Source: Auanema rhodensis
Lineage: Eukaryota > Animalia > Nematoda
DNA: 64,000 nucleotides
Direction of reading: 5' to 3'
Assembly: GCA_964057225.1 (NCBI GenBank)
Contig: OZ059898.1
Location: 14,756,001 to 14,820,000 of the forward strand
Part shown: one piece after another, positions 9,088 through 49,022 of the stretch
Numbering within the stretch: the first letter of the stretch is position 1
Layout of the letters: each line of letters starts with the position of its first letter
The notes under the pieces: model-generated
Databases searched by the model: none
What the model was told of the DNA's origin: nothing
The model's input: the letters and a program-made list of their open reading frames with translations, nothing else
Position numbers and translations under genes: made by a program

Positions 9088-9168
9088 GAAGGCGGTGCCA
9101 TTCCTCATTCCTCTAGTCGGTCTGGCTCTAACCCTGCAGTTACATATATAGAGTCTCCGAATGGAACG
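9088..9168 (-). repeat. Truncated 3' LTR of element 1 (first 81 nt of U3 only)
   Basis: Identical to 20787-20867; joins directly to + strand tRNA spacer with no TSD. Confidence 0.95.
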
Positions 9169-9866
9169 TGCCCTTTTTCAAAGATTGTCGCGACCTCGCG
9201 ATATTTTAAACAAAAATTTGGGCTTATATGTAACTGAGTTTTAGAGTTCAATTGTTTTAGTTTCACAATAACTATAGTATGATAGAGTTTTAATTAGTAT
9301 AAAAACAAAATTACAATAATTTATAAGAAGGGTTCGATATAATATAAAGTAACGATGAATTAGAATATTATTAATTTCATAAATTAATTCTCTTAATATT
9401 GAAGCATTTCCTAATAGAGATTGTAGAATAAGGGTCTAGTAATGAATGGGAATATGTTATTATTTTGACTAATGGTCTCAAGAAGTACTCATTTCTAAAT
9501 TGAACCGAGATTATGATTTAATAATGTGTCTCCATATGTCTCCCAGAGTGAATCCTTGATCACTAATGGAGACTACCACTTAAGATGAAATTGTGGTTTA
9601 TACGCCTACCAGTGTTTATCTAATCTTATTTGAGGAGGCACATGCAGCTCTGATGGTTGTCAAAATGTCCTCTAGTCCGCATAGGATTACGGTAACTTGG
9701 AACCATTAGTCATAACATCTCCTCGTTTAGAATTTGCCTTATTTTTCCTTTTTCAATCTCTATTAAAAGCTATTTTTATTTTGAATGTTATTTAGCATTA
9801 ATTTTTTTTTTCTAATTCATCGTTATTTTGTTACAATAATTAGAATAATGTAGCATTATCTTGTTG

Positions 9867-10488
9867 TTATTCTTCTTCATTCCTCGGAAGCCATATTTCG
9901 TCTTCATTTTCATCTTCTGGCTCTGTATCTATGCTATCCTTGTTGTTCCTGTTGATCACTTTTATTATTTCGATGTCGCTATCTTCTTCTGCTTGACTTT
10001 CTCGAAGTCTTGCGCGAGTGTTGTAAGAGATGTTTTGTGAAGCAGGAGAGAAGATTTTCAAGTTATCTTTGTGGATATCTTGTAGTTTTCCTGATGAATT
10101 TCTGATTTGAACTTTTGATCCTTCTACGTTGATGACTTCGTATGGTCCATCATAGCTTTTCCGAAGCTTTTGGCCGATTTGGTGTGATTTTATGGTCGTC
10201 ATCACCATGTCGCCCGGTTGAATGTCTCTATGGTGTGCTCTTTGCGTTCTATCCTTCTTCTTTTTTGCATTTTCTTGATTTTTAGCTATGCGGTTCTTTA
10301 TTATTTCGTCTCTCTTGTCCATATCTGGTCTTCTTTGGAGTAATTCTTCAGAAATTTCTTGAATTTTGGTGATCGTTTCTGGTAATTCAGCGTCCATTGA
10401 CATTCTGCATTCTTTACCAAATAATGCAATGTATGGCGCAATCCCTGTAGTCGCGTGCTGAATATTGTTTATAGCAAAAGTGATTTTT
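9867..10488 (-). pseudogene. Frameshifted C-terminal part of element 1 integrase (end of core plus GPY/F module and acidic tail)
   Basis: Alternate frame reads ITFAINNIQHATTGIAPYIALFG then ...LRKSYDGPYEVI; adding one A to the A5 run (plus-strand T5 at 10484-10488) restores one continuous ORF. Confidence 0.9.
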
Positions 10489-13400
10489 GTAATACAGTAT
10501 CCCAGTCACTAAGGTCCTCTTTTAAGTAGTGGGTTAATCCTTCTTCGAGGGTTCTGTGAAGTCTTTCCACTTGTCCATTTGAGTTCTTTTGGTGTGGTAG
10601 TGTTGGTTCATGTTTGATTCCAAGTTTAGTACACATTTCTTCGAACTTTTTGGATACAAAGTTCGAACCTCTATCGGTGATCAAGCGATGGGGTGGTCCA
10701 AAAATGTAAACGAAATGTCGTAGAAATCGGTCAATTGTGATTTCCGTTGTTATTTGTGGTACAGCAATTGTTGTTGACCATTTTGTAAATGCGTCTTGCA
10801 TGGTAATGACGTAGGTACAGTTTCTTTTTGAAGGGGGAAATGGTCCCATTACGTCCATGTGGACTCGTTCAAATGGCTTGCTTGGTATCTCAAAATGACC
10901 TATTGGTTGTACCGTCATGGAATGTGGATCTTTTTTTCTTTGAGCACATTTAATGCAGTTCTTGATGAATATAGTAATGTCGTTCTGCATATTTGTCCAA
11001 TAGAATCTTCTTAGAATAGCTTCTTTTGTTTTAATAATTCCTTGATGTGCTGCAATTGTAGGATCCTCATGAAAAACTTTGATTATTTCCTCAATTATGG
11101 GGTGTTCTTGTGGTATTACGATAGCGGGTTGTGGCTTTTTGTCTGTTGGTTTTGTATATAGCAAGTCGTTTATGACACAATATCTGTCATTAGCTGTCAT
11201 GTTCTTTTGTGCTCTATATTCAATCTCCGCTATCGTCCGTTTAATCCAAGGGGTGTTTAGTTGAATTTCCTTTATTGTTGGTGTATTTATGGCGTTAATG
11301 TGAATTTCTTCCATTTTCTTCTTCTTTGTTTCCGGCTTAGCATCGTTAGCTTCTTCACCTATATATCGAGATAGAGCATCGCATACTTTATTTAATTGGC
11401 CTGCGCGATATTTTATTTCAATATCATATTCTTGGATGACCAGCTGGAACTTCGCAAGACGACCAAATAAGTCTCTGCGTGTCATTAAGCTGGTAAGGGG
11501 TCGATGGTCCGTAATACATATAGTATGAGTTCCAAGAATGTATGTACGGAATTGATTTAATGCATATACAAGGCCTAATGCTTCTATCTCGATTGGTGCG
11601 TAGTTACGTTCGGCTTTAACTAGTTTTCTGCTTGCAAATGCGATAGGGTGTAGATTTTTCAGAGGTTGTTTTGGATCTTCCGGTTGTAATAATACAGCAC
11701 CTATGGCGATGTTACTACCGTCGCTTTCAACTATAAACAAACGGTCCGATTTAGGTGGGCTTAAAACGGGTGCCTGTATTAAACTTCTTTTAAGGAGGTC
11801 TAAAGCTTCTTGATGTTTGTTTTCCCATTTGAATTCAGTATCTGCCTTTGTCAGATCGTATAAAGGGCTTGCGATACGTGCAAAATCTTTCATGAATTTG
11901 CGAAAGAATCCAACCATTCCCAAGAATGCTCGTACACCTGTTGCATTCTTTGGTGCCGGATAATCTTGTATGGCGGCGACTTTTTGAGGGTCAGGTTTTA
12001 TACCTTGACGTCCTACAATAAGTCCTAGAAATTTCACTTCTGGTTGAGCAAAAGCGCATTTCTTAAGCTTTATCTTCATTCCCAATTCTTCTACTGCTTG
12101 CAGTAAATCATCGATATCTTTGAGATGTTGTTCTCTTGTATCAGATATAACTAATAGATCGTCCAAGTAAACAAATAGTTTACAAGAACATTTACTTTGC
12201 AAATACCTTACTGCTGTTTGAAAGGTATGAGGGGCTCCACAAAGGCCCATCGGCATCCGTTTGTACTGGTATGTGCCGGATGTGGTCGTAAATGCTGTTA
12301 GTGGTCGATCTGATTTTCTCAAGGATATTTGAAAAAATCCTGACACTAAATCGAAGTTTGAGAAAAATTGGGCGCCTGCTGCCAAATCAACTATGTCAGA
12401 AATGCTTGGAATGACATAAGTTTGCTTGCGTGTGACATTATTTAAAGCTCGAAAATCTGTCACAAACCTATACGTGTCATCTTTCTTCTTAACTAGTACT
12501 ACAGGGCTATTAAATAGAGATGTAGAAGGCTCTATTATGCCTTGCTCAAGCATTTCTTTGACTTGCTTTTCAATTTCTTCCTGTTTTCCTAAGGGAATAC
12601 GTGTTATTCTCGGCTTTGGCATATCCATATCTGTTCTCAATGGTATGGTATGCTCTATAGGACCTTTAAATAATCCTATTTTCCTGTCCTCGTTAAGAAA
12701 TGCCTCACGATGGCTTTCAATTATTTTTGTAAGCTCATGTTTTTCTTCTTTCGTGAGATCAGCATTCTCTAGATCAAGATCTTTTATGAAGTGTCTTGGA
12801 AAATATGGTAGTTTACTCTCCCAATCGGCTTCTGGCGGAACATATGGTAGAATTGGCTTATGCTTAAAGGGTTCACAAGCCGGAATTTCTCCAATTATTG
12901 CCTGCCCGATGACTGAATTAGCTTCCATAGCTATTGTTTCATCGGTATCGTTACGGAACATAACATATACTCCACTGGTATCACGAAACGCAGTTGGATA
13001 TAATGATTTTAATGCGCTTCCACTATCCCCTAAGACAACCACTTCGTTAGATTCTAGTGGTTTATCTGTCTTTATTGGGATAGGTGCCTCTTCATCAGGC
13101 TTTAATGTTTTTGTTCTTAAATTAATGATATTCACAGTTATCTCCGTATGCTTAATAGATTCGTTTCCTATTAATGGGATGGCATTGTTTCCAATCTCCA
13201 ACCTCTTCTTGGATGGTTTAAGGCTGACGTCGATGTTTTCGCTGTCAAGCGCTTTCATGAAATCTAGTCCAATTAAAGCGGGAGCAGGACAGTCATGATC
13301 GTTTGAGACCAAAAAGGTGTGTTCGATCTCGTAACCGGCAATTTCAATTACAAGATTTATCTTTCCATAAAATGTGAAAGTGGACTTGTTGGCTGCCATC

Positions 13401-16400
13401 GCTACTAAATGTCTCTTCTTGACATTTTCGGCCATGTTCAGATATTTGAGGGTGGAGAGCCTAACATATGACACTGATGAGCCTGAATCCCATAAAGCTA
13501 AAATCAGTTTATCTTCAACTGATATATATATTAATGGTAACTTTGTTTCCGCTGATACAATAGAAGCAACAAATGGTATTGCGATTGGAATAAATGTTAC
13601 TAAAGCAGGATAGTATTGCTTCATGATGTTATCTGGCATCTGTTGGTCTGGGCGGCTTACAAGTTCCAATGTTTCTTCATAGCTTGGGGGCTCATTATCT
13701 ATTTCGTGGACATGCATTACGGTTAGTGGAGTGGCTCTGAAGAACCAAAATTTAGCAACAACGAAAAGAATTATTAATACTGCGGCAATCGTAACCATTG
13801 ATCCTATGAAGATGAGTGTTCTCTCAATTGATCCTATTAGAAATTGCTTTACGCTAGTCCAGGCGGAAGTTGTGAACTCAGCTGCTTTAGAGATATAGTC
13901 ACTGCCCTTTTTCAAAAGATTAAAGGCGGACGTAATTTTTGGATCGTTGTGAATAGTATGTAAAACATGGTTCTGTCGTATGGATGCTAAACTTGCTCCA
14001 TATGCAATAGCTGTTGACATTGAGTAAACTCTCAATGATAAATTGGTGTATAAGTTAGCGCCTGTGAACTTTAAAGGTGTTAATTGGTGGTATTGCGCTT
14101 TATCAAAGAGTGATATTGGTTTTACTTCAACCGATCCATTTATATTTATCCATTCTCCATTTTGATAGTATACATCTGTGGGTACATGTTCGCAATCTAT
14201 CTCTTTTCCATGTGTTAATAAGTCTCTTGATCCTGGAGCAGCAAAATATAATCTCTCATCTTCTGTTATTACTGGTGTTTCCAAATAGCATGTATCATTG
14301 ATCTTATGATTATGATAAACAGCTTTAGGTTGAAGAGGTAAGCATATATGAACATGAACTATATCGCTGCCTACGAAACGGGCTGCAATATCCTCTCTTC
14401 CTAAAATAGTCCTCATTGCTATTGTGGGTTCTATGTGTAAAATAGAACGCCATAGCTCGAGGTATCTATTTTGAATCTCACATATGGATTCATAAGATTC
14501 CATAAAACGTTTCTGTAGCTCTTCTTGTATGAGTGTTGTTGTATATTGTAGATGATCTTGAGCTATTCTGCGAGATACGTTGAGGTTGAATTGTATTTCG
14601 TTGTTCACTTTTGACGCTGTATACGTTGCCTGAGCCTGAATTTCTCTGGTTTCTACGGGTGGAGATGATGTTCTTTGTTTCCTTAAGGTTCGTGACGCCG
14701 TGTCAGTGACTGTTGCTAATGTTGTTGGCGAGAGAGTCGTAGTTATCACGGCTGTTGTCGTGTCAACTATGGTTGTCGTCGGAATCCGAGTCGTATAGCT
14801 TATAGTTGTCTCCTGAACTAGTGAAGCGGGTTTGTCCGTTGTTGTCGTTAATGACAGTCTTCTAGTCAGATAAGGCGGTGTTTCAATATCCTCTAACAGT
14901 GGCAAAAATGTTTTTATAAGTAGCTGGCGTGTATCCGCGCTTGGGGTTTGAATGCGAGGGTGGGGGCCCATCGATATACCGTAGTTAGAATCTTTATCTC
15001 GATATAGTTTGTTGGTATCTGGCACATTGATTGTTAATTGTCGGAACTTTTCATCATCTACGGCTGCTGCTGTTTTATTTGGCCTTATTACTCGCAATGT
15101 CATCAAGTTATGGTATAAGTAAAGTGTATTTCTAAGTACTATACGCTCATCAGCATTGTCAGTTGTTAAAGTTGGTCGGATAGGCGGCATGTTCACAAAG
15201 GATTTTAAAACCTCTTGCCTTGATGGTACCGACAGATTGTTTTCAAATATTACCGGTGTATAAGCTAGCTCCATCGCTATGCTTTCGGCTCTTTCGCGGT
15301 AGGATCCGTCCTTTTCTAGTAGTTTTTCGTCAAATTCGTGTGCTGTTAATCTGTCACCTATCTGTTCTAATAATTGTTTTGAGGTTAAATACCGTATAGC
15401 GCCGCGAGTGGTTGCTGCCAGTTCCTTTTGCGCAAGAAAATAAAGTATTGCTTCCTCAGGGTCGTGTATTTCGTATGTTTGAAGGAAACGTTGTATGGAT
15501 TTATCAGATACGGGACTTCTTAAGAAGAAATAAAACTTCTCGGGATGTGCTGAAACCCAATCAATAATTGAATATGAAGGGTTGACAGCTCGTCTGGCCT
15601 TTATAAGCGGTATTATCTGATAAATACCAGGATTACTCATCACCGGTCGTAAGAAAGGATAAGGACAAATATTTAATATTAAAGTTTCAAAATCTTCCTG
15701 TTTTTGTATCCACTCCTTGTTTAATTCAACCGTGCATTCCGCAATTGCTCTTTTATCTCTTTTCGCCGGAAGTTTCTTATATTCTCTCTCTATTAAAACA
15801 TGGATATTGGTGTCATTTGGGTACTGTGGTAAGAGAATGTAATTGCCAGTTGTGGTGTGGAAGATTGGCTGTTTAAAACAAGAAGATATTTGCTTCGGTA
15901 TCTCTTTTTGATCGATTACAAGGGCTGATTGAGTGGTTGGTAACAGAATAATGCCGTCTCCAATTATCGCATCATATTCACTCATGTCGATATAGTTGCA
16001 TCGATATTCATAAGGCTGTTTCTCCCATATGATGATTGAGGTATCTGATGCACATTCTCCATGATGCGCTAAGCATCCTTCAGTATTTAGTATTAAATTG
16101 GAGATTATAGTTTCATCTGGCATCCGTGTCATAACCCCTCTTTCGATAACCAATCTGGCTTTCTCTTCACATAGTTCATTATTAAAAGATCGGCCTGGCG
16201 AGAAGGAAGGCTCGTCAGTTGCATATGTTATGCTGTCGATCTTCTTTAATTCACTCCAATTCCATCTTCTATCTCTCACTGCCAGTCTGCATTCTGCAGC
16301 TGGTATCTTTTCAATTCTCGCTATCGTTGTATTGGTATCTCTAAGGAACAAAAGGTCTCTGATACACATTTTATGAATTTCTTTGGAGCATCTCCATGCA

Positions 16401-18571
16401 TCCCATTCATGTGCCGTTTGATTCCTTGTATAAAGATGAACTTTTGTTCGTAAGATATGCTTTATTGGTGGTAATAAGCATTTTCGGAGAGATGGGGGAC
16501 GGAGAAGGGCTCCTCCAGTAGCTTTAGTACATAGCTGGTATGCTTCAGCTGTTGTAACCAGTGATAAGATTACTGATAAAGCTACGGCTAAAGTCAAAGG
16601 AGATATCAGAGTCAAATTATTGACTCTTGAGCCTCTACCTCTGCCTCTATTGTTGTTATTTCCCCTAAAGGTACTGTTATTTCTCTGTCTATTATTGCTC
16701 ATTTCTTGATTTTGTGATGCATTATGGCTTCTTTGATACCCATTTTGATTTTGATTCTGATAATTTTGACCGCGGTCACCAAAATTGCGGTTCCTAGCAA
16801 ATGGGTTTTGGAAATTCCAGCCTTTTTGATTTTTTGAAAATTTATGATAATTTTGATTGTTTTGAAAGTTTGGATGATAATTGTTATAATTATTATAATT
16901 TTGATAATTTTTATTATTAAAAGATTGATAACCTCTTGCCATACCTCTCCCACCATTGTTTCTGCGCGGGGGGAAAGTTCTTTCAATTGCGTTAACCAAT
17001 AGCGCCTGAGGGTCTGCTACTTGGTTTGCAATTGATTCCTCCCAGCGAGCACTATCAACAGCCTCAGCAAAAGTTTTGGGTTTTGCTCGAATTACCCCTG
17101 GGCGTATCGTATTTTTCAAGCCTCTCAAAAATGTGGACCTCAGAATGTGATCTTTATGAGTATCACTATTAGAGAAAGCATTTAAGCTGAGGTTTCTTAA
17201 CGTTTGTGCAAAACCATCAATTGATAAATCGCCTTGAGTGCTGTTTTGAAGTGTGATAAGGGCAGGGTCTTGATTGTATTCGGGACACAGCTTGGATGTT
17301 AACTCTTCTATTAGGGTAACCCAAGGTCCAGCTGTTCTGACCTTGTCAGGTAGCTCTAAATAAGCTTCCTCTGCTCTATCATTTTTCAATAGTAATGGTA
17401 AAATAGTTAGTCTTTCGGGCATCACTAAGCCTAAGGCGTTAGAAAAGGTATTAAACTTTGCCACGAAATCTCTAAAGTTACGACTTCCGTCGTATATGGG
17501 GCAATAAGGTGAGCTTAATGCGTGCGCAATGGTAGATTTACCAGCTCCCGGAAGACGTGGTGTCTCCGTCATGGTTGGTATATCCTCAGGGTATGTGCGA
17601 GATGACGTAATCCCTTTACTGCCTGAGCTTCTCGCCGTTAAGTTCTTACCTCCCTTTTTCGAGTTACCAGATGTTGGATAACTAATGGTAGGGGCGGCTG
17701 AGGAGAACCGCTTCCCTGGGAGTTTGATAACTCGACTCGTTGCCTGAGGCGTCGAATGTATTGAAACGCTTGAGCTGGGTATAGCGCTATCTGACTTATT
17801 AAGGGTTGGGTTGGAGGATACGTGAAGAGAGTTATCAACTTGTTCTGTTGTTACCTCCCCTGGAGACAAATTCAAAACTTTTATTAAGCGAGCTGTTAAA
17901 GATTTCTTACTTTTGAACTTATCAGTAGTTAGTGATAAGGGCAAAACTTCGGTAATTTCCTGATTTGGTTCTATGGGATTATTAGAGGTTGAGCGCCTAC
18001 GCGGTGTATTAGTTTTTCTTTTATTAATCTTTTTAGAATCAAGCTTTTTCGAATCAAGCTTATCAGTGATAACTGATAAGGGTGATTTGCGAATAGTGAG
18101 AGATGAGGTTTTATTAAGTTGTGAGTTTTCTATCGGAGTGGAAAATGCCTGCGGTGTTAGAGTTAGTTCAAAAGAAGATGCAAGATCGTTATCAGTATTA
18201 ACTGATAAAGTTGATAAGTTTAGGTGGGGGGTGGCTGGTGAAGTATTAGAGGTTATTTGTTTTGGTTTTTGAATTTTTTTAATCTTTTTATTACTTTTAA
18301 AAGAGTGTACCTTTGGAGTTGAAGCTGAAGTTTGAATATTGTAGTCCTGAATATAGAAATCAGGGTCCTCCTCGGTGTTGTCCGGAGGTGAATACGTGCC
18401 TTCTCGAGGAATGAAGGTTTTCTCGACTTTGGGTTTTACCTCTTGTTCAGGCTCTTCAATCTGAACACTGAGGAGTCGAGTGCGGCTTCTGGTTCGACTG
18501 GCGACTGCGATGTCGTCACTGGACTCAGAAGGGTATAGAGCAGGGACGGCCGAAGAGTATCTTCGTGCCAC
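10469..18571 (-). CDS. Gag-Env-Pro-RT-RNaseH-IN polyprotein (2700 aa to the frameshift; about 2900 aa if repaired)
   Basis: Capsid-like YDGSRNFRDFVAKF...STFLRGL; internal signal peptide and TM; protease LWDSGS (about 13485); RT YLDD (about 12160); RNase H SDGSNIAIGAVL...DALSR; integrase H-H-C-C, HMDVMGP, TDRGSNF, SNGQVER. Annotated start is GTG; first ATG is at 17572. Confidence 0.95.
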   Translation of the reverse strand: MARRYSSAVPALYPSESSDDIAVASRTRSRTRLLSVQIEEPEQEVKPKVEKTFIPREGTYSPPDNTEEDPDFYIQDYNIQTSASTPKVHSFKSNKKIKKIQKPKQITSNTSPATPHLNLSTLSVNTDNDLASSFELTLTPQAFSTPIENSQLNKTSSLTIRKSPLSVITDKLDSKKLDSKKINKRKTNTPRRRSTSNNPIEPNQEITEVLPLSLTTDKFKSKKSLTARLIKVLNLSPGEVTTEQVDNSLHVSSNPTLNKSDSAIPSSSVSIHSTPQATSRVIKLPGKRFSSAAPTISYPTSGNSKKGGKNLTARSSGSKGITSSRTYPEDIPTMTETPRLPGAGKSTIAHALSSPYCPIYDGSRNFRDFVAKFNTFSNALGLVMPERLTILPLLLKNDRAEEAYLELPDKVRTAGPWVTLIEELTSKLCPEYNQDPALITLQNSTQGDLSIDGFAQTLRNLSLNAFSNSDTHKDHILRSTFLRGLKNTIRPGVIRAKPKTFAEAVDSARWEESIANQVADPQALLVNAIERTFPPRRNNGGRGMARGYQSFNNKNYQNYNNYNNYHPNFQNNQNYHKFSKNQKGWNFQNPFARNRNFGDRGQNYQNQNQNGYQRSHNASQNQEMSNNRQRNNSTFRGNNNNRGRGRGSRVNNLTLISPLTLAVALSVILSLVTTAEAYQLCTKATGGALLRPPSLRKCLLPPIKHILRTKVHLYTRNQTAHEWDAWRCSKEIHKMCIRDLLFLRDTNTTIARIEKIPAAECRLAVRDRRWNWSELKKIDSITYATDEPSFSPGRSFNNELCEEKARLVIERGVMTRMPDETIISNLILNTEGCLAHHGECASDTSIIIWEKQPYEYRCNYIDMSEYDAIIGDGIILLPTTQSALVIDQKEIPKQISSCFKQPIFHTTTGNYILLPQYPNDTNIHVLIEREYKKLPAKRDKRAIAECTVELNKEWIQKQEDFETLILNICPYPFLRPVMSNPGIYQIIPLIKARRAVNPSYSIIDWVSAHPEKFYFFLRSPVSDKSIQRFLQTYEIHDPEEAILYFLAQKELAATTRGAIRYLTSKQLLEQIGDRLTAHEFDEKLLEKDGSYRERAESIAMELAYTPVIFENNLSVPSRQEVLKSFVNMPPIRPTLTTDNADERIVLRNTLYLYHNLMTLRVIRPNKTAAAVDDEKFRQLTINVPDTNKLYRDKDSNYGISMGPHPRIQTPSADTRQLLIKTFLPLLEDIETPPYLTRRLSLTTTTDKPASLVQETTISYTTRIPTTTIVDTTTAVITTTLSPTTLATVTDTASRTLRKQRTSSPPVETREIQAQATYTASKVNNEIQFNLNVSRRIAQDHLQYTTTLIQEELQKRFMESYESICEIQNRYLELWRSILHIEPTIAMRTILGREDIAARFVGSDIVHVHICLPLQPKAVYHNHKINDTCYLETPVITEDERLYFAAPGSRDLLTHGKEIDCEHVPTDVYYQNGEWININGSVEVKPISLFDKAQYHQLTPLKFTGANLYTNLSLRVYSMSTAIAYGASLASIRQNHVLHTIHNDPKITSAFNLLKKGSDYISKAAEFTTSAWTSVKQFLIGSIERTLIFIGSMVTIAAVLIILFVVAKFWFFRATPLTVMHVHEIDNEPPSYEETLELVSRPDQQMPDNIMKQYYPALVTFIPIAIPFVASIVSAETKLPLIYISVEDKLILALWDSGSSVSYVRLSTLKYLNMAENVKKRHLVAMAANKSTFTFYGKINLVIEIAGYEIEHTFLVSNDHDCPAPALIGLDFMKALDSENIDVSLKPSKKRLEIGNNAIPLIGNESIKHTEITVNIINLRTKTLKPDEEAPIPIKTDKPLESNEVVVLGDSGSALKSLYPTAFRDTSGVYVMFRNDTDETIAMEANSVIGQAIIGEIPACEPFKHKPILPYVPPEADWESKLPYFPRHFIKDLDLENADLTKEEKHELTKIIESHREAFLNEDRKIGLFKGPIEHTIPLRTDMDMPKPRITRIPLGKQEEIEKQVKEMLEQGIIEPSTSLFNSPVVLVKKKDDTYRFVTDFRALNNVTRKQTYVIPSISDIVDLAAGAQFFSNFDLVSGFFQISLRKSDRPLTAFTTTSGTYQYKRMPMGLCGAPHTFQTAVRYLQSKCSCKLFVYLDDLLVISDTREQHLKDIDDLLQAVEELGMKIKLKKCAFAQPEVKFLGLIVGRQGIKPDPQKVAAIQDYPAPKNATGVRAFLGMVGFFRKFMKDFARIASPLYDLTKADTEFKWENKHQEALDLLKRSLIQAPVLSPPKSDRLFIVESDGSNIAIGAVLLQPEDPKQPLKNLHPIAFASRKLVKAERNYAPIEIEALGLVYALNQFRTYILGTHTICITDHRPLTSLMTRRDLFGRLAKFQLVIQEYDIEIKYRAGQLNKVCDALSRYIGEEANDAKPETKKKKMEEIHINAINTPTIKEIQLNTPWIKRTIAEIEYRAQKNMTANDRYCVINDLLYTKPTDKKPQPAIVIPQEHPIIEEIIKVFHEDPTIAAHQGIIKTKEAILRRFYWTNMQNDITIFIKNCIKCAQRKKDPHSMTVQPIGHFEIPSKPFERVHMDVMGPFPPSKRNCTYVITMQDAFTKWSTTIAVPQITTEITIDRFLRHFVYIFGPPHRLITDRGSNFVSKKFEEMCTKLGIKHEPTLPHQKNSNGQVERLHRTLEEGLTHYLKEDLSDWDTVLQKSLLL
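13700..16620 (-). other. Envelope glycoprotein domain embedded between Gag and protease
   Basis: Signal-like LISPLTLAVALSVILSLVTTAEA|YQLC (mature start 16540); Cys-rich ectodomain with N-x-S/T sequons; dibasic sites RDKR and RKQR; Thr-rich mucin-like stretch; TM LIFIGSMVTIAAVLIILFVVAKFWFF (about 13740-13820). Confidence 0.85.
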
Positions 18572-18984
18572 TTTGGAATCACTCTTGGTTTGGAAAAACC
18601 GCGAGTGTTTCGTTATATGGGGGATGTTGACGTTGAATGAGTGACAAGAAATTCAGGTCGGTTATAGGGAAAAGTAAGAAAAGTTTGAAGATTGAGACGT
18701 GGCGTCTTTCGCCGAGAATCGTTATTAGATGAGAAAGAGTTTTAAAATCTTGGCCTGAGATCTGGCTCCGCCTATCTACCGTATTCTCTTTTCTTTATTC
18801 TTTTTCACAGATGTTCATCAATTATAAATTTTGTTGGTCTTCGCTCTTTCCAGCCTCGATCTTAATACTTTACTCTAATTGAATTCTTGAAAGTATGAGA
18901 GAGATTTTCAGTCGTTTTATGTCCCCTTTTTATGCATAAGAATCTTTATATTTGTAGAGCTGAAAAAAAAAAATAAATCAAAGA

Positions 18985-20488: not shown

Positions 20489-20501
20489 GGTGGAACCTCC
20501 A
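20489..20501 (-). promoter_or_regulatory. Primer-binding site of element 1, complementary to the tRNA-Gln 3' end
   Basis: Minus strand TGGAGGTTCCACC immediately after the LTR; metazoan tRNA-Gln ends ...GGTGGAACCT-CCA. Confidence 0.85.
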
Positions 20502-36077: not shown

Positions 36078-36130
36078 ATAATTTAATGTATCACGAATTG
36101 TTTACAAATCTACAGCTAGAAACAATATTC

Positions 36131-38959: not shown

Positions 38960-39424
38960 TCATCGTCTTCTTCTTGGTGGTAGCCAATTTTGGTCCGATG
39001 GGTCTTCTGGTTCTGTTTCTTCAGTAGAGTCATAGTTATCGTTACTATTTATGACTTTTATGATCTCAATATCGCTGTCGTCGTCCGTGTCATAAGTCGT
39101 TGTATTTGATCGCGTGTTTTGAGCGATTGTATGGTCCATTTTGCGTTTTTTTTTAGCAGTAACTGGTGTTTGTTCTTCCACTATGATGGATGTTTCTTCT
39201 CCTCCTGGTGGTACGTAATCCTCGTCGCTTAATCGTTCAGTAGGTGAATAAGTGCCTGCACGAGGAGTAAAGAATTTGTCGGTTTTGTGCTCGGCTTTCT
39301 GTTCGTCTTCGATTATAGCGATGCTCTGCGCGCGAGCTCGGCTTCTGGTGAGTGGAGCTGAGTCTCGCAGATCAAAATCAGTTCGTGTACTGAGAGGTAC
39401 AGCTGATCGGAATCGCTTATCCAC
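38960..39424 (-). CDS. Mini-polyprotein: in-frame fusion of polyprotein N-terminus and integrase C-terminal tail (154 aa from GTG; frame conserved up to about 39478)
   Basis: RFRSAVP..TRSR..FTPRAGTYSP matches RYSSAVP..TRSR..FIPREGTYSP; DSDIEIIKVIN..TEPED..WLP matches the 9867-10403 tail. Confidence 0.8.
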   Translation of the reverse strand: MDKRFRSAVPLSTRTDFDLRDSAPLTRSRARAQSIAIIEDEQKAEHKTDKFFTPRAGTYSPTERLSDEDYVPPGGEETSIIVEEQTPVTAKKKRKMDHTIAQNTRSNTTTYDTDDDSDIEIIKVINSNDNYDSTEETEPEDPSDQNWLPPRRRR

Positions 39425-40822
39425 TTTGGTAGCGCTCTTGGTTTGGAAAAACCTTGAGTGTTTAGTAACGTGGGGGATTTTGAGACGTTAATGAGTGTTA
39501 TGGATAAGGAGTTTTGGAAAAGGGGTGAGAAAGCTGTGAGTAACTGGTTTGTATAGTCGGCGTTAAGGAATGAATCTAAGTTGTGGCCATCAACAGAGAT
39601 CCGCCTACTACCGTATGAAAATTTGGACTTTGTTCGCTTTCCAATTTAATATTCTTAAATGTATATAATTCAACCAGTTTGTATATGTTCAAAAATGTTC
39701 AGTGCTCACTTGATTGATGCCTGAGCAATCTCATTAGTCCTTATTCCCACTTTTTTTTCTTTTTTTCTGACGATTCTGATCTTCTTGGACTCACGAGTGA
39801 TCGAAAATGCCACGAAAATGGACTTTGGTAAATGTTCAAAGGATTTTAGCGGTTTTCATAATGTACATTCGTAATAGCATTACTCTTTAAGGAAGCAATT
39901 TGGAAAACGAATGAGTACCGTAGTCCCATCATGATCAGAAATCTAGTTTTAAAATTATGGCTAGGAATAGATGACTAAAGATTACAATAACTATATTTAA
40001 AGAATTATGGTGTTTAGGAATGAGTCTTATGCTTCAAAACAACAATAACGGTATGAGGAAGGTGACATATAGTAAGGGGAGAAAATCCAAACTGATATGC
40101 TTAAGCCAACACGACCTGATAGACAATCACTAATAATAATTCAGTTCGTAAAATTGTACAGGATTTTTCGGACTATAGCGATCTTAAAATTCACTTTTCA
40201 TAATATTCCTCCCATTTAGGTGAGGTTTCCCGTGTAAATTCAATGCGTTATCAAAATATTTTTAGATGTTAATGGCAAAAAGTTGTCTGAACAGAAATGT
40301 AACGCAAAATAAAATAGTCCTGATCGCAAAATATGAAATAATCTCAATTTGGTGCGCAAAATTGTTTCATCCACAAAAATAAAGAAATAACCGTGGCTAT
40401 TCTTTCCTCGAAGCCAAAATCAATCCTTAAAAGGAGAAAGTGTAGGCATAAATCTCAAAAAAAAATTATCCTTGGGTGAATTTGTTCACTAATTCATCCT
40501 AGGGTCCTCAAAAATGCTTCGAGTTCGGGTAACAGAGTATTCGATGTTAACAGCAAGGGTATAAAAATTGTTGGGTTCAGACAGACAGAAAATTGTGAAC
40601 AAACGGGAAAATATAACTTCAGTTTCAAAAAATATAAAATATCCATCTCCAAAAGGAGTGGTCCTTGCATCTGTTCCCTTTTAAACGTTGTTGGCCCCAC
40701 CGTATTGTGTTAAGACATGGAGTAGATGGTTTAGAGATATAAGAGAATTCAGATTCAATGAATTGTATTAAAAATAACGAAATATAAGAGAAAATAGTCA
40801 AGAATCAAGATAAAATGTTCGA

Positions 40823-40835
40823 GGTGGAACCTCCA
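40823..40835 (-). promoter_or_regulatory. tRNA-Gln PBS of element 3
   Basis: TGGAGGTTCCACC flush with the LTR. Confidence 0.85.
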
Positions 40836-41172
40836 CGTTCCGTTATGCTCTCACGTCGATCCTATAGACCAATAAAGCCTACAAGATGAGTGTGATAGTA
40901 TTCCAGATGTAGCGGTAGATAAAGAGCATAATGGATAAACATAAGACTCGAGAAAGAAAGGTTTCTTATGTCTACATGATTACAATAAGTTATATAAGTC
41001 TACATAAAGATATAAAGTGAAAGAGAGCTAAGAAAGGAAGACCAACCATCCATAGTCATTCCATAAGGCAAAGCTGAAGTCTGTGTTCCATATGAAGGGC
41101 GTGTCGTCCTCTCTCAGCCTCATGTCGTCTGATTCTAATCCGCCTGCTACGTATTGATTTCCGAATGGAACG
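40836..41172 (-). repeat. 5' LTR of element 3
   Basis: 337 bp, adjacent to the PBS. Confidence 0.95.
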
Positions 41173-44100
41173 TGGGTGAAAACCACGAATCCTAACCACT
41201 AGACCACATGGGACACGTTAACTGTTCTTATGATACTACTTCTTCTATCATTTACCTCGAGGAAGTGAGTAAGCAACAAGGGAAGTAACAACGATGAATC
41301 GGCCCCGTATTAACTTCTAACAAAACGATTAAATGCAGAAAAGAAATTTAGAAGAGAGCTGAATTCAAAATATGGAAATTCAGAAGAGAAGATGCCAAAA
41401 GATGGCTTCCCATGCCGGGAATCGAACCCGGGCCGCGTGGGTGAAAACCACGAATCCTAACCACTAGACCACATGGGACACGTTAACTGTTCTTATGATA
41501 CTACTTCTTCTATCATTTACCTCGAGGAAGTGAGTAAGCAACAAGGGAAGTAACAATGATGAATTGGTCCCGTATTAACTTCTAACAAAAAGATTAAATG
41601 CAGAAAAGAGATTTAGAAGAGAGCTGAATTCAAAATATGGAAATTCAGAAGAGAAGATGCCAAAAGATGGCTTCCCATGCCGGGAATCGAACCCGGGCCG
41701 CGTGGGTGAAAACCACGAATCCTAACCACTAGACCACATGGGACACGTTAACTGTTCTTATGATACTACTTCTTCTATCATTTACCTCGAGGAAGTGAGT
41801 AAGCAACAAGTGAAGTAACAACGATGAATCGGCCCCGTATTAACTTCTAACAAAAAGATTAAATGCAGAAAAGAGATTTAGAAGAGAGCTGAATTCAAAA
41901 TATGAAAATTCAAAAGAGAAGATGCCAAAAGATGGCTTCCCATGCCGGGAATCGAACCCGGGCCGCGTGGGTGAAAACCACGAATCCTAACCACTAGACC
42001 ACATGGGACACGTTAACTGTTCTTATGATACTACTTCTTCTATCATTTACCTCGAGGAAGTGAGTAAGCAACAAGGGAAGTAACAACGATGAATCGGCCC
42101 CGTATTAACTTCTAACAAAACGATTAAATGCAGAAAAGAGATTTAGAAGAGAGCTGAATTCAAAATATGGAAATTCGGAAGAGAAGATGCCAAAAGATGG
42201 CTTCCCATGCCGGGAATCGAACCCGGGCCGCGTGGGTGAAAACCACGAATCCTAACCACTAGACCACATGGGACACGTTAACTGTTCTTATGATACTACT
42301 TCTTCTATCATTTACCTCGAGGAAGTGAGTAAGCAACAAGGGAAGTAACAACGATGAATCGGCCCCGTATTAACTTCTAACAAAACGATTAAATGCAGAA
42401 AAGAGATTTAGAAGAGAGCTGAATTCAAAATATGGAAATTCAGAAGAGAAGATGCCAAAAGATGGCTTCCCATGCCGGGAATCGAACCCGGGCCGCGTGG
42501 GTGAAAACCACGAATCCTAACCACTAGACCACATGGGACACGTTAACTGTTCTTATGATACTACTTCTTCTATCATTTACCTCGAGGAAGTGAGTAAGCA
42601 ACAAGGGAAGTAACAACGATGAATCGGCCCCGTATTAACTTCTAACAAAACGATTAAAAGCAGAAAAGAGATTTAGAAGAGAGCTGATTTCAAAATATGG
42701 AAATTCAGAAGAGAAGATGCCAAAAGATGGCTTCCCATGCCGGGAATCGAACCCGGGCCGCGTGGGTGAAAACCACGAATCCTAACCACTAGACCACATG
42801 GGACACGTTAACTGTTCTTATGATACTACTTCTTCTATCATTTACCTCGAGGAAGTGAGTAAGCAACAAGGGAAGTAACAACGATGAATCGGCCCCGTAT
42901 TAACTTCTAACAAAACGATTAAATGCAGAAAAGAGATTTAGAAGAGAGCTGAATTCAAAATATGGAAATTCAGAAGAGAAGATGCCAAAAGATGGCTTCC
43001 CATGCCGGGAATCGAACCCGGGCCGCGTGGGTGAAAACCACGAATCCTAACCACTAGACCACATGGGACACGTTAACTGTTCTTATGATACTACTTCTTC
43101 TATCATTTACCTCGAGGAAGTGAGTAAGCAACAAGGGAAGTAACAACGATGAATCGGCCCCGTATTAACTTCTAACAAAACGATTAAATGCAGAAAAGAG
43201 ATTTAGAAGAGAGCTGAATTCAAAATATGGAAATTCAGAAGAGAAGATGCCAAAAGATGGCTTCCCATGCCGGGAATCGAACCCGGGCCGCGTGGGTGAA
43301 AACCACGAATCCTAACCACTAGACCACATGGGACACGTTAACTGTTCTTATGATACTACTTCTTCTATCATTTACCTCGAGGAAGTGAGTAAGCAACAAG
43401 GGAAGTAACAATGATGAATTGGTCCCGTATTAACTTCTAACAAAAAGATTAAATGCAGAAAAGAGATTTAGAAGAGAGCTGAATTCAAAATATGGAAATT
43501 CAGAAGAGAAGATGCCAAAAGATGGCTTCCCATGCCGGGAATCGAACCCAGGCCGCGTGGGTGAAAACCACGAATCCTAACCACTAGACCACATGGGACA
43601 CGTTAACTGTTCTTATGATACTACTTCTTCTATCATTTACCTCGAGGAAGTGAGTAAGCAACAAGGGAAGTAACAACGATGAATCGGCCCCGTATTAACT
43701 TCTAACAAAACGATTAAAAGCAGAAAAGAGATTTAGAAGAGAGCTGATTTCAAAATATGGAAATTCAGAAGAGAAGATGCCAAAAGATGGCTTCCCATGC
43801 CGGGAATCGAACCCGGGCCGCGTGGGTGAAAACCACGAATCCTAACCACTAGACCACATGGGACACGTTAACTGTTCTTATGATACTACTTCTTCTATCA
43901 TTTACCTCGAGGAAGTGAGTAAGCAACAAGGGAAGTAACAACGATGAATCGGCCCCGTATTAACTTCTAACAAAACGATTAAATGCAGAAAAGAGATTTA
44001 GAAGAGAGCTGAATTCAAAATATGGAAATTCAGAAGAGAAGATGCCAAAAGATGGCTTCCCATGCCGGGAATCGAACCCGGGCCGCGTGGGTGAAAACCA

Positions 44101-44837
44101 CGAATCCTAACCACTAGACCACATGGGACACGTTAACTGTTCTTATGATACTACTTCTTCTATCATTTACCTCGAGGAAGTGAGTAAGCAACAAGGGAAG
44201 TAACAACGATGAATCGGCCCCGTATTAACTTCTAACAAAACGATTAAAAGCAGAAAAGAGATTTAGAAGAGAGCTGAATTCAAAATATGAAAATTCAGAA
44301 GAGAAGATGCCAAAAGATGGCTTCCCATGCCGGGAATCGAACCCGGGCCGCGTGGGTGAAAACCACGAATCCTAACCACTAGACCACATGGGACACGTTA
44401 ACTGTTCTTATGATACTACTTCTTCTATCATTTACCTCGAGGAAGTGAGTAAGCAACAAGGGAAGTAACAACGATGAATCGGCCCCGTATTAACTTCTAA
44501 CAAAACGATTAAAAGCAGAAAACAGATTTAGAAGAGAGTTGATTTCAAAATATGGAAATTCAGAAGAGAAGATGCCAAAAGATGGCTTCCCATGCCGGGA
44601 ATCGAACCCGGGCCGCGTGGGTGAAAACCACGAATCCTAACCACTAGACCACATGGGACACGTTAACTGTTCTTATGATACTACTTCTTCTATCATTTAC
44701 CTCGAGGAAGTGAGTAAGCAACAAGGGAAGTAACAACGATGAATCGGCCCCGTATTAACTTCTAACAAAACGATTAAATGCAGAAAAGAGATTTAGAAGA
44801 GAGCTGAATTCAAAATATGGAAATTGAGAAGAGAAGA
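41173..44837 (-). repeat. tRNA-Glu array segment A4, 13 intact genes (left coordinates 41407 to 44587)
   Basis: 265-bp periodicity. Confidence 0.96.
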
Positions 44838-45250
44838 CGTTCCATGTTGGTTCCCCAGGGTTCCGGCTGGGTAACCACATGGAATTACTTTCTTTTCTTC
44901 CAAATATAAATGATAAAGAGCATAGAGAGAAAGGTTTATTTATGATAAAGTATACAAATTACAATAATAAAAGTTACATAATGATTCCTAGTCGCAGCCC
45001 AAAGGACTCGTAAGGAAACCTTATATAGTATTCCTTACGAGCATAAAAAGTGGTTATATCAGGTCCGCGGAACTTGGTTCCGCTTGAATTGGGCTTTCTT
45101 TAATTAAACTTAATATGAAAAAATGTTCGTTCATTGTTGCATTGAATTCCTGTTTCTCAAATGTAGCGTCAGCTATTTGTTTTTATAATGTTCCGTTTTA
45201 TAAGCGATTGACGTTGTCAATCGCTCTACTTATAGGACACGTATGGAACA
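44838..45250 (-). repeat. 3' LTR of element 4
   Basis: Direct repeat of 48610-49022. Confidence 0.95.
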
Positions 45251-45452
45251 TGCCTAATATCGAAAAAGTAGCTGACCTCAGCTACATCGAGAAAGTGAAA
45301 TTCCATGCAAATGTGAAAGTTGTATGAAATGTTTCAAAAAATAAAAGAATACTTATAATACAGAACAATTTTATGAGAAAAAATAAAGGAAAACAATGTA
45401 ATTACAAAATAATATATCATATATCATACTGGGAATCTTTCAAAAGTTCTTT

Positions 45453-46055
45453 TTAGTCTTCTTCATAATACTGGTGTATCTCTGGTAATGGTGATGATCC
45501 TAGGTCGTGGAGAAGATCCATAGTCTTGTTGCATAAATCCGTTTTTCTTTCCATTTCTTCCTTGGTGGTTGCTGGTGATGCCAGAAATATTTGTAGAGCA
45601 TTTATAATGCTTTTTCTTGCCTCTGTGGATGGCAGTTCGCTGCAATGTTGCAGGCTCCATTCTTGATAGGCCGAATGGGTCTCGGCAATAATCCAGTTTG
45701 GTGTCTGCTGTTCTGGTGAATCGCAACTAGGTGAATAACCTAGTTGGTCCCTTAGTTCAGCAATGGCATCTCGGATGACACCTGCTGTGTTGGTCCATGG
45801 TCCTATGCAGTGGTCAACCTCCGACAGTCGATCCTTGTCGTATTGGTAACATAGGATTTTGAGCGTTTCAGTACTGGTGTTCGCTCTTGTTAGTCCTTGA
45901 ACTAACTCTTTCAGGATCTTCTCTTTCCTGGGGCGGTTGGCGATGGTATTGGCGCCTAGCTGCTTCAATTCTCTTAGTAATAGTTGAATTGAAAGCCATC
46001 TCTTTTTGGCCATCATGAGGGGAATTTCGACGGCTTCAGGAAGTTGGGTGGACAT
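45453..46055 (-). CDS. Hypothetical 200-aa helical protein (cargo of element 4)
   Basis: ATG in acaATG context; GC-richer island flanked by AT-rich non-coding DNA; amphipathic-helix patterning. Confidence 0.7.
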   Translation of the reverse strand: MSTQLPEAVEIPLMMAKKRWLSIQLLLRELKQLGANTIANRPRKEKILKELVQGLTRANTSTETLKILCYQYDKDRLSEVDHCIGPWTNTAGVIRDAIAELRDQLGYSPSCDSPEQQTPNWIIAETHSAYQEWSLQHCSELPSTEARKSIINALQIFLASPATTKEEMERKTDLCNKTMDLLHDLGSSPLPEIHQYYEED

Positions 46056-46424
46056 TGTTATCTTTGTTACTGTTTTCTGTCCTTTTATCCTTTTAAAACT
46101 AGGTCGGTCTGTTCCTTCCTTTTTGTCGCCTCCTTTTTGATCAGTTAGGTGAAAAAGTGATGAAGATTGGTAATTAAAACTTTGCAGTGATTTTTGAAAG
46201 ATTCCAAGTATGATGTATAATTTTATTTTGAAATTTTGGTTATTAATACAATATTTTCATGAGAGTGAAAAATACAAATGTACAATAATTTGTGTAGAAT
46301 TTTATGTCTTACTTAAATGAGAAAAAAAAAATATATATAGGTTCAAGTTTAGATGGAAATTATGAAAATTATGAAAATGGTATTATACTTTTTGTGATTT
46401 TTATATAGAAATTATGGATTTTTA

Positions 46425-46703
46425 CTATTGTTCTAGCTTCTTACTTGTAGTCCCAATAACTGTTGACGGTCTTTTCTTATGGATGACTGGTACTGTTGGT
46501 GCCACGAAGTTTGGGTCCGGGATCTGACTCTTCGAAACTCTCTTCTTCGGCTCTGTTACTGGTATGGTGCTGTGATACCTTATCGGCACATGATAAGGCT
46601 TTGCTGGCGTTGTAGGAGAATTATCTTCTAATCCCAATGCCAATTTAAGTGCTGAACTCCATTTCTTAATTGTGGGTGGCTCCTTCTTCCGTTCCTCATA
46701 CAA
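46425..46703 (-). CDS. Basic Pro/Lys-rich ORF, probably the continuation of 46724-47161
   Basis: No ATG (TTG start); frame overlaps the end of the upstream ORF; similar composition. Confidence 0.4.
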   Translation of the reverse strand: MYEERKKEPPTIKKWSSALKLALGLEDNSPTTPAKPYHVPIRYHSTIPVTEPKKRVSKSQIPDPNFVAPTVPVIHKKRPSTVIGTTSKKLEQ

Positions 46704-46723
46704 TTCTTTTCTTGCGTTTTCTT

Positions 46724-47161
46724 CTATTTTCTCTGATAGTTTGGTGAATTTCGAGGAAGAGGAGAAGAAAGAATAGCAGTATTTGGGTATGAAAATGATA
46801 TTTGAGAATAATCTTTACAAGGGGAAGTATTTGTGCTAACATAGCTAGAGCTTTTGATAACGTTAGAATTGCGTTTAGGAGTTTGTTTGTTAATAGACGT
46901 TTTAATTTTACTAAGAGTAATAGCGTGGCGAGAAGTTTTGATAGCTGTTGTGCCTATTTTTTTCGCGGGGGTACCCGGTATAGCGGGTGGTTTCTTTGCA
47001 GCAGTAGGTCGGCGCTTCGTGTCCGGCTCATAAACATTTGGAGGTCCTCTCTTTCTTTGATTCTGCTCGAGTACTGGCTCGACGTGCGTATCATTACGGG
47101 GGGCTGCGCTCTGTGGATTTGTTTTATCCTGCGGAGGATTTTTACTCTTCGAGTCCGTCAT
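46724..47161 (-). CDS. Basic, disordered 145-aa hypothetical protein
   Basis: ATG 13 nt after a TTTCCAG acceptor-like site; K/P/T/S-rich with NLS-like RKR and KRR. Confidence 0.5.
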   Translation of the reverse strand: MTDSKSKNPPQDKTNPQSAAPRNDTHVEPVLEQNQRKRGPPNVYEPDTKRRPTAAKKPPAIPGTPAKKIGTTAIKTSRHAITLSKIKTSINKQTPKRNSNVIKSSSYVSTNTSPCKDYSQISFSYPNTAILSSPLPRNSPNYQRK

Positions 47162-47937
47162 CTTGTTGGTTTTCCTGGAAAGGAAATTATTATACCAACG
47201 ATGCGAATCTTATAAAAATATATATACAACGTGAGAGGCAATATGGGGTTGTATGCGTGACGCTTGCTAGGGGGCCAGCCTGCAGCGAATCTTCTAACGG
47301 AGAATTGCTCAATCGGGTACATACACGGGCCTGTGACCGGTGCGCCCTTTCTAGGATCAAGTTCCCATCTCTCGAATAGGCGTGAAATATACGACGGTGA
47401 TCTAAGCAGTATTCCCTTTCAGTCTTTCGACAAGATTAGGTGCTCAGGCCTCGTACATTCACTTTCCCAGACTTCTCTTGCCTATGAAAAATCACAGAAA
47501 TCGCTCCCTTAACGAAATTCTGCTCCCCTGATTTTTCATGGTGAGACCACTCTAACACTTTCATTCTCGACTAATTCTGTCGTAATTTTCAAATTTGCAA
47601 AAATAGGACCAAAAAGGGATCTTCAAAATCAGGAATGCGTACGTCTTATATCAAAAATAGTGGTTGCCTCCGCTCAGTTCTCGAGACAGTCTGGTATTGC
47701 TTCTCACGGGCTACTTTTAGGATCAAAATGCAAAATTGTAAATCTTAGGTTCGGGATTCAGATAAAAAATTTCAAAATTATTTGGCTGTTTTCTGGGTTA
47801 TATTAGGAAGAAGAGAAAAAATAATAGTAATAAGAGAGGGAAAAAGATAAAATTTAAAAGAAGATAAAAGAAAAATAAAATAGGAATATAGTAGGAATAT
47901 AGTAGGAATATAGGACTAGTATAGAATAGTTTTGTAC

Positions 47938-47941
<4 letters not shown>

Positions 47942-47992
<51 letters not shown>
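47942..47992. repeat. (TA)n microsatellite, about 25 units, in the element 4 leader
   Basis: Direct reading. Confidence 0.95.
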
Positions 47993-47995
<3 letters not shown>

Positions 47996-48588
47996 GAGTA
48001 ATACATTTTAAAGGATAGAATAGAAATTAATGAATTTTAATATATATAAAACAATGAATTTTGTGATGATTCATAAAAGAAATTAATTCATTTTTGATTC
48101 AAAAATTGTTTGAAACTTTATAACAAAAATTTATAAGAGATAGAATAGATTTTGATTAAAAAAACAGAAAAAGAAAAGATTGACAGAAAAAAAAATATCG
48201 AAATACCTTTCTTTAAATGAATAAATATAAAAGAATTTCAAATTAATTTATGATAGTTATAAACAAAGTTTTTCCTCAAAAATGAATGAAAGATCTTAGA
48301 ATATGGATAAAAATCGAAATGTTTCTTTTAAATGAATGAATATAAAATTTCAAAATTAAGTTGTTTCAAAATATATTATTTTAAATAAATGTATATAAGA
48401 TTTCAGTATTAATTTATGAATCAAAATCAAAATAAAGTTCTTTGAATGAATGAAATAAAGAAGAGAAAGATTTCAAATTAAATTCATATAGCATAATCGA
48501 AATACAATTCTTTAATTAGATGTATGAAAGACAACAAAATTAAATTTATGTAGCGAAATATGGTTCTTAGAGATTCGTCGGTTATAGA

Positions 48589-48609
48589 CGAATCTCGGTG
48601 GAACCTCCA
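48589..48609 (-). promoter_or_regulatory. Long tRNA-Gln PBS of element 4
   Basis: Plus strand CGAATCTCGGTGGAACCTCCA corresponds to the tRNA-Gln 3' end including CCA. Confidence 0.9.
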
Positions 48610-49022
48610 CGTTCCATGGTGGTTCCCCAAGGTTCCGGCTGGGTAACCACATGGAATTACTTTCTTTTCTTCCAAATATAAATGATAAAGAGCATAGAGA
48701 GAAAGGTTTATTTATGATAAAGTATACAAATTACAATAATAAAAGTTACATAATGATTCCTAGTCGCAGCCCAAAGGACTCGTAAGGAAACCTTATATAG
48801 TATTCCTTACGAGCATAAAAAGTGGTTATATCAGGTCCGCGGAACTTGGTTCCGCTTGAATTGGGCTTTCTTTAATTAAACTTAATATGAAAAAATGTTC
48901 GTTCATTGTTGCATTGAATTCCTGTTTCTCAAATGTAGCGTCAGCTATTTGTTTTTATAATGTTCCGTTTTATAAGCGATTGACGTTGTCAATCGCTCTA
49001 CTTATAGGACACGTATGGAACA
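48610..49022 (-). repeat. 5' LTR of element 4
   Basis: 413 bp, adjacent to the PBS. Confidence 0.95.

Follow-up and report, generated by a model that had tools for sequence, protein, structure and literature searches.

Pol-less LTR elements sharing terminal, priming and 3' stem-loop signals with a gag-env-pro-pol element in a tRNA-Glu array of Auanema rhodensis

The nematode Auanema rhodensis carries, on contig OZ059898.1 of GenBank assembly GCA_964057225.1, a tandem array of tRNA-Glu genes that is interrupted by long terminal repeat (LTR) elements. Here, we describe an analysis of 64,000 nucleotides of this contig (positions 14,756,001 to 14,820,000 of the forward strand, numbered from 1 below and called the window), in which self-comparison of the four gaps in the array showed each to be filled by an LTR element (E1 to E4). 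E1 (9088-20867, minus strand) is a Ty3/gypsy-type gag-env-pro-pol retrovirus-like element whose 3' end is truncated, E3 (37927-41172, minus strand) is a 3.2-kb pol-less element, and E4 (44838-49022, minus strand) is an LTR element of 4.2 kb in which no gene is recognisable. The fourth element, E2 (29060-36444, plus strand), is a Bel-Pao LTR retrotransposon that stands outside the group sharing signals. We propose, with a probability of roughly 0.6, that E1, E3 and E4 belong to one clade of tRNA-Gln-primed Ty3/gypsy-type nematode elements, and that E3 and E4 were integrated by enzymes of this clade acting in trans.

The signals shared by E1, E3 and E4 are found at the LTR termini, at the primer-binding site and directly upstream of the 3' LTR. 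The LTRs of E1 (366 bp; 5' copy at 20502-20867), E3 (337 bp; 5' copy at 40836-41172 and 3' copy at 37927-38263) and E4 (413 bp; 5' copy at 48610-49022 and 3' copy at 44838-45250) have the lengths given in an earlier, sequence-only reading of this DNA. That reading had also called their sequences different, which has to be amended for E1 and E3, whose LTRs are diverged homologues with 63-65% identity. Likewise, the termini CGTTCC...GGAAC(G/A) that it had assigned to all three elements are correct for E1 and E3 (CGTTCC...GGAACG), while E4 begins with T (TGTTCC...GGAACG) and all three end in GGAACG. Among the three elements, 9-11 of the first 11 nt of the LTR and 7-8 of its last 8 nt match, and each LTR contains the motif ATAA(T/G/A)AAACCT 103-135 nt before its end. 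The LTR is followed without a gap by the primer-binding site in E1 (20489-20501), E3 (40823-40835) and E4 (48591-48609); the three elements agree in the first 13 nt of this site, and the sites of E1 and E3 are identical over 19 nt. We assign the primer to tRNA-Gln because the sites match antisense oligonucleotides to the tRNA-Gln 3' end that have been printed in PMC11421004 and PMC7744096, one of which is a mouse-liver pulldown probe. The site of E1 and E3, 13 nt that are complementary to the tRNA-Gln 3' end, equals the start of these oligonucleotides, and so does the 19-nt site of E4. The flush tRNA-Gln site of the earlier reading is thereby confirmed. Besides low-complexity words and one 10-nt word in the LTR, the only word common to E1, E3 and E4 is one of 19 nt that runs from the LTR end into the primer site.

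At the other end of the internal region, the tetranucleotide GGCA directly precedes the 3' LTR in all three elements, as the sequence-only reading had noted, and a stem-loop ends 17-22 nt before the 3' LTR. This stem-loop lies at 9188-9201 in E1 and 38286-38299 in E3, where the stem has 5 bp and the loops read AGGU and AGGA, respectively, and at 45268-45285 in E4, where a 7-bp stem of other sequence carries the loop AGGU (all on the minus strand). Comparison of the three sequences bears out the common 3' hairpin proposed earlier: all 5 shared pairs form, with 15 of 15 pair cells standard, and at 4 of these pairs both bases are different in E4 from those in E1/E3, a pattern that none of the slid controls produced. 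These compensatory changes in the stem argue for selection on the hairpin. Shuffled sequence from all four elements gave a chance expectation of about 0.5 hairpins of this kind, and an Rfam scan of E1, E3 and E4 returned no match at E values up to 0.1. As a separate observation, the closing G together with the loop reads GAGGU in E1 and E4, which corresponds to positions 3-7 of the primer site, and GAGGA in E3; a second contact between the stem-loop and the primer tRNA is only a thought.

E2 serves as a control within the same array. Its 305-bp LTRs are 100% identical and have TG...CA ends, its primer site is a different one, it is flanked by a 5-bp duplication (GTAAC), and the shared 3' hairpin is absent from it. 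Because the signals of E3 and E4 are those of the E1 clade and are absent from E2, they suggest that enzymes of the E1 clade were used. E2 itself was considered as the source of enzymes for E3 and E4 and was rejected on account of its other ends, other primer site and 5-bp duplication. The element looks very young and runs opposite to the tRNA genes; it has a GC content of 28-30% and contains a gag-like frame of 710 codons and a pol frame of 1289 codons.

E3 and E4 are precise, fairly recent insertions of the integrase type. The 4-bp target duplications reported for them earlier, CCCA for E3 (41173-41176 and 37923-37926) and TCTT for E4 (49023-49026 and 44834-44837), were verified at both loci. 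The CCCA duplicated by E3 represents tRNA positions 38-41, such that a tRNA-Glu gene is disrupted by the element, and the empty site rebuilt from the host flanks has 101 exact, uninterrupted paralogues in the array. E4 was inserted into an array unit of a 298-bp variant, with a tRNA-Glu gene lying 15 bp upstream of it, and the rebuilt empty site of E4 is exact in 3 of the 3 other units of this variant. The two LTRs of each element differ by 2 mismatches, amounting to a divergence of 0.6% in E3 and 0.5% in E4. If nematodes mutate at a few 1e-9 per site per generation, the insertions would date back on the order of a million generations. The claim that both elements integrated recently without enzymes of their own is upheld by the 2 mismatches in each LTR pair and by the lack of reverse transcriptase and integrase sequence: no homology to reverse transcriptase, integrase, Gag or Env was found in E3 or E4, either with Pfam or in tblastn and phmmer searches with E1 and 120 relatives, save for two remnants of the frame ends in E3.

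Near-identity of LTR pairs might also be produced by gene conversion rather than recent insertion, in which case the shared signals would be inherited traits of old, dead elements. The units of the surrounding array are 97-99% alike, so conversion is active nearby. The LTRs, however, are not array sequence, and the members of a pair lie ~2.9 and ~3.8 kb apart, measured from start to start. Furthermore, the 4-bp duplications and the empty-site paralogues are exact, as expected of clean insertions of fairly young age, and the compensatory changes in the stem point to a hairpin under selection. We therefore give this explanation hardly any credence.

The relation of E3 to E1 extends over the entire length of the shorter element. 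Nucleotide identity of 63-68% was found in the LTR, in parts of the leader, at the start and at the end of the coding frame and in the 3' region. The open reading frame (ORF) retained by E3, of 154 codons (38963-39424, minus strand), consists of the two extremities of a giant frame fused in frame; its amino acid sequence is 47% identical to the beginning of the E1 frame and 53% identical to the very end of E1 pol, and a protein database search with the 154-codon ORF returned no match. The deletion removed ~96% of the coding span, in frame, and the LTRs, primer site, leader, 3' untranslated region, GGCA and stem-loop were kept. Given this homology to E1 throughout, E3 is, as judged by sequence comparison, an internal derivative, arisen by one deletion, of a sister family of E1 and not an unrelated element. 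The leader of E1 spans ~1.9 kb without a long ORF (18572-20488, minus strand), and the blocks within it that are conserved in the leader of E3 are candidate cis-acting RNA signals.

E4 presents a different picture. Its 3.4-kb interior showed no detectable protein-level relation to E1, to E3 or to the 120 relatives, and a search for remnants of gag, env and pol with 120 queries yielded only scattered matches with E values of 0.003 or weaker, which we treated as chance. Two ORFs of 200 and 145 codons have no Pfam match, and the longer of them found no match in a word-index search or among 1.84 billion protein representatives; a single-sequence structure model of its product is helical and of low confidence, with a predicted local distance difference test score (pLDDT) of 59. 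The purine tract before the 3' LTR of E4 is weak, GGCA alone being kept. Both the LTRs and the interior of E4 appear unrelated in sequence to those of E1 and E3, with which it has short signals only in common, and the element would be classed as LARD-like. Two minor features of E4 were also recorded. Inverted repeat arms of 30-46 nt (45400-45445 and 46192-46235) bracket the 200-codon orphan ORF; a nested element with terminal inverted repeats around this ORF is unsupported, as the arms match best at their inner and not at their outer edges. The leader of E4 contains, at 47881-47992, an (AT)27 microsatellite as well as an 11-bp repeat present three times.

The different make-up of E3 and E4 bears upon an alternative in which both are single-locus wrecks, that is, elements that entered the array as full-length autonomous members of their own families and whose genes were deleted in place. 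Such an in-place deletion would leave the LTRs and the target duplication intact, as they are found; each element is represented by one copy in the window; E3 derives from an E1-like element by plain deletion; and the repetitive array is prone to rearrangement, as witnessed by the cut 3' LTR of E1 and the change of strand of the array at that element. This account does not readily accommodate the fact that the in-frame deletion in E3 spared every non-coding part that a dependent element needs, nor an element such as E4, in which LTRs differing at 2 of 413 positions enclose 3.4 kb without a trace of gag, env or pol, a structure that one simple deletion explains poorly. We judge it unlikely, though by no means negligible.

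Several considerations weigh against the proposal that E3 and E4 were integrated by enzymes of the E1 clade in trans. With one copy each of E3 and E4, the window holds no second insertion with a different target duplication, and protein searches returned no other copy, so that deletion after the entry of a once-autonomous element keeps some probability, above all for E3. An autonomous element with E3-type or E4-type LTRs is likewise not present in the window. Additionally, sequence and word comparison found no packaging signal common to E4 and to E1 and E3, and the stem-loop comparison is one of three sequences, two of which are related.

The member of the proposed clade that encodes enzymes, E1, contains a gag-env-pro-pol gene (9870-18571) with a frame of more than 2,600 codons that is free of internal stops, and one frameshift; this gene and all features of E1 given below are on the minus strand. 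The order of its Pfam domains is fusion glycoprotein, aspartic protease, RVT_1, RT_RNaseH, Integrase_H2C2 and rve. The aspartic protease domain (13253-13522) gave weak Pfam matches below the curated cut-off. The reverse transcriptase and RNase H domains (11426-12493) and the integrase zinc-binding and catalytic core domains (10592-11098) were identified by Pfam and by a match to Ty3 Gag-Pol, which is the best match of E1 Pol in the PDB (7q5b, E 3.5e-102); a gB chain also matches, weakly. The sequence-only reading, in which E1 alone encoded Gag, Env, protease, reverse transcriptase and integrase, stands as regards the domains found in E1 and has to be qualified in two respects, namely that pol is frameshifted and that E2 also has its own gag and pol.

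In the Env region of E1 (13622-16624), an internal signal-like hydrophobic segment and a membrane anchor flank ~1,000 residues that include a gB-like class III fusion ectodomain. This region matches PF24664, the Monjiviricetes/gB-type fusion glycoprotein, with 54.5 bits (cut-off 27), and PF00606 below its own cut-off. A structure model of Env has a mean pLDDT of 56, yet contains confident β-rich and helical parts, and when this model was compared with the PDB by Foldseek, 50 of the 50 matches listed were herpesvirus gB ectodomains (best E 1e-11).

The nearest proteins to E1 in a large protein database are all from rhabditid and tylenchid nematodes, with identities of 49% in Auanema, 41% in Caenorhabditis auriculariae, 42% in C. 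remanei, 39% in Diploscapter and 32% in Meloidogyne. These relatives have the same set of domains (gag, fusion protein, protease, reverse transcriptase, RNase H and integrase), which places E1 among the gag-env-pol Ty3/gypsy elements of nematodes, errantivirus-like elements that have already been described, as set out in PMC13524379, which cites Sacco et al. 2022. E1 resembles the described elements in having a gag-like region, a gB-like class III fusion protein, the series protease, reverse transcriptase, RNase H and integrase, an LTR and a tRNA primer site, and differs from them in its cut 3' LTR, its pol frameshift and an N-terminal extension of 333 codons without ATG. These 333 codons open the long frame, and the probability that such an opening would stay free of stops by chance, estimated from the base composition, is ~1e-10. 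The best-conserved stretch between E1 and E3, likewise a candidate for a cis-acting RNA signal, is that of ~60 nt immediately upstream of the frame start (18572-18650 in E1; 39425-39500 in E3), and the frames of both elements start with GTG at the same aligned position.

Two defects mark the present copy of E1, an element of autonomous type. A short ORF downstream of the long frame is the C-terminal continuation of the integrase in another frame, and in the relatives the two are continuous; pol thus appears to be broken once, by a frameshift in the integrase part, although an indel in the assembly would look alike. At the 3' end, the pair of LTRs that had been attributed to E1 was not found: what is present is a remnant comprising the first 81 bp of the 3' LTR (9088-9168), which follows GGGCA, matches the 5' LTR at every position, stops where the array changes strand and adjoins the inverted array block.

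Whether the E1 family itself acted as the helper is a narrower question than whether the clade did. In its strongest form, this explanation holds that the RNAs of E3 and E4 were packaged into the enveloped particles of the E1 family. In its favour, the three elements have the same, or very nearly the same, LTR ends, primer tRNA, GGCA and stem-loop, and lie within 40 kb of each other, and the gB-type Env of E1 looks complete, having both a signal-like segment and a membrane anchor. The LTR and leader of E1, however, are only 63-68% identical to those of E3, and E4 is unrelated to E1 outside the short signals, having only the LTR ends and primer site in common with it, whereas the members of known pairs such as ETn and MusD share LTR and leader sequence. 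Moreover, the copy in the window is not complete, as the greater part of its 3' LTR is missing and its pol is frameshifted (either of which could be an assembly error), and the packaging of RNA into particles is not a matter that the DNA sequence addresses. We consider a direct role of the E1 family improbable. The proposal of the sequence-only reading that an E1-like helper mobilised E3 and E4 is accordingly kept in part: the two elements have no enzymes of their own and share the signals of the clade, but with identity of 63-68% or short signals only, the E1 family is not favoured as the helper. A related idea, that E4 is a parasite without ancestry in any one autonomous family, whose minimal signals (integrase ends, tRNA-Gln primer site, GGCA and covarying 3' stem-loop) would allow it to exploit any member of the env-bearing clade and so to travel between cells or animals in enveloped particles, strikes us as similarly doubtful.

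Under the reading that we prefer, in which enzymes of the clade acted in trans, the RNAs of E3 and E4 would have been reverse-transcribed from a tRNA-Gln primer by a reverse transcriptase that, like the integrase, was supplied in trans. Both enzymes would have come from autonomous elements of the clade, most likely ones more closely related to E3 and to E4, respectively, than E1 is. The conserved LTR ends may serve as recognition sites for the integrase, and the covarying stem-loop beside GGCA may be a recognition element for plus-strand priming or for the selection of RNA.

Dependence of one LTR element upon the proteins of another has precedents. In the mouse, ETn is a non-coding LTR element that is moved by the proteins of its coding-competent relative MusD, a relationship established by experiment and involving hundreds of copies (PMC6466679). 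E3 is like ETn in that it has no coding capacity beyond a remnant and bears traces of homology to a coding relative; it is unlike the ETn/MusD pair in that its sole coding relative in the window is ~65% identical, whereas ETn and MusD share LTRs and flanks closely. Both E3 and E4 have the features by which LARD, TRIM and ETn elements are recognised, that is, an LTR pair with a target duplication, a primer site and a polypurine-type end, and no coding sequence for reverse transcriptase or integrase. In plants, LARD and TRIM elements depend on autonomous partners, as in the pairs Dasheng/RIRE2 and BARE2/BARE1, and form families of many copies. The LARD and TRIM classes are also used in annotations of Meloidogyne genomes. 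E4 is similar to a LARD, being an element of 4.2 kb with LTRs, a primer site, a polypurine end, a target duplication, a non-coding interior and no pol, and is dissimilar in being one copy in an animal, LARD and TRIM families being defined by many copies.

A third point of comparison is offered by pairs of long and short interspersed elements (LINEs and SINEs), some of which share a 3' stem-loop that is recognised by the reverse transcriptase. In a similar manner, a short 3' hairpin has been kept across the otherwise unrelated E1/E3 and E4, and is a candidate handle for an enzyme; reverse transcription proceeds by a different mechanism in LINE/SINE pairs, and the function of the hairpin in E1, E3 and E4 is inferred only.

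These comparisons determine what is new. The sequence-only reading had regarded satellites of this kind as undescribed; dependent LTR elements (ETn/MusD, LARD/TRIM) and gag-env-pol elements of nematodes are both already known, and what survives of the claim is the link between the two, of which we found no description in the literature. The main text of PMC13524379, the principal comparative study of these elements, does not contain the term 'non-autonomous'. E3 and E4 add, then, a new case to an established pattern, that of dependent LTR elements, within a described group of nematode elements. If E3 and E4 prove to be multi-copy in the host genome, dependent LTR elements would be linked to env-carrying Ty3/gypsy elements of nematodes. 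The clade would then be characterised by a small group of cis signals, among them a 3' stem-loop maintained through compensatory changes, and this set would provide a handle to find more such elements and to ask which RNAs the enzymes of the clade accept. As it stands, the locus neatly illustrates a familiar phenomenon in striking surroundings, and its most interesting details are the covarying 3' stem-loop and the very large array of tRNA-Glu genes.

This array, recognised as the setting in the earlier reading, was confirmed: ARAGORN identified 139 tRNA-Glu(TTC) genes with a period of 265 bp in a tandem array that fills the 64-kb window. It continues past both ends of the window, and the number of genes overall therefore exceeds 139. 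A literature search found no description of such a tRNA-Glu array in nematodes. The similarity of its units (97-99%) is a sign of strong homogenisation. The genes between 187 and 9003 are on the plus strand and those between 20968 and 63819 on the minus strand; E1, E3 and E4 have the orientation of the minus-strand tRNA genes, as had been stated. No LTR copies or solo LTRs beyond those of E1 to E4 were found within the window.

E1 through E4 all adjoin tRNA genes. Ty3 and some other LTR elements target tRNA genes, and the elements described here are similar in their location and differ in that they keep no fixed distance: E3 lies inside a tRNA gene, and E4, E1 and E2 lie 15 bp, ~100 bp and ~120 bp downstream of one, respectively. 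Targeting of the Ty3 type is unsupported, as the four insertions occurred at four different phases of the unit, and accumulation in a redundant array explains the placement of the four elements as well as targeting does.

The strand of the array flips exactly at E1 (9087/9088 and 20867/20868), so that a plus-strand block on the left and a minus-strand block on the right converge on the element. The left block (1-9087) consists of 34 tRNA-Glu(TTC) genes at the 265-bp period, in the orientation opposite to that of the remaining array, and the block to the right of E1 (20868-29059) consists of tRNA-Glu units on the minus strand. Units of the left block differ from those of the right block at a median of ~12 positions, as compared with 8 and 6 positions within the blocks, and no unit-by-unit mirror was found between the two blocks at any offset. 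A fold-back assembly artefact at E1 was rejected, since divergence between the blocks exceeds that within either of them and no mirror is seen; as the blocks are not mirror copies, the change of strand represents a real rearrangement or a misjoin rather than a fold-back duplicate.

Finally, the length of the unit is not entirely uniform. Units of 298 bp, which carry a 33-bp insert, are present at 49339-49708, 54142-54511 and 56560-56929, and E4 lies in a fourth such unit. Units of 260 and 264 bp are found between the tRNA genes starting at 22823 and 23083 and between those starting at 27058 and 27322, respectively.

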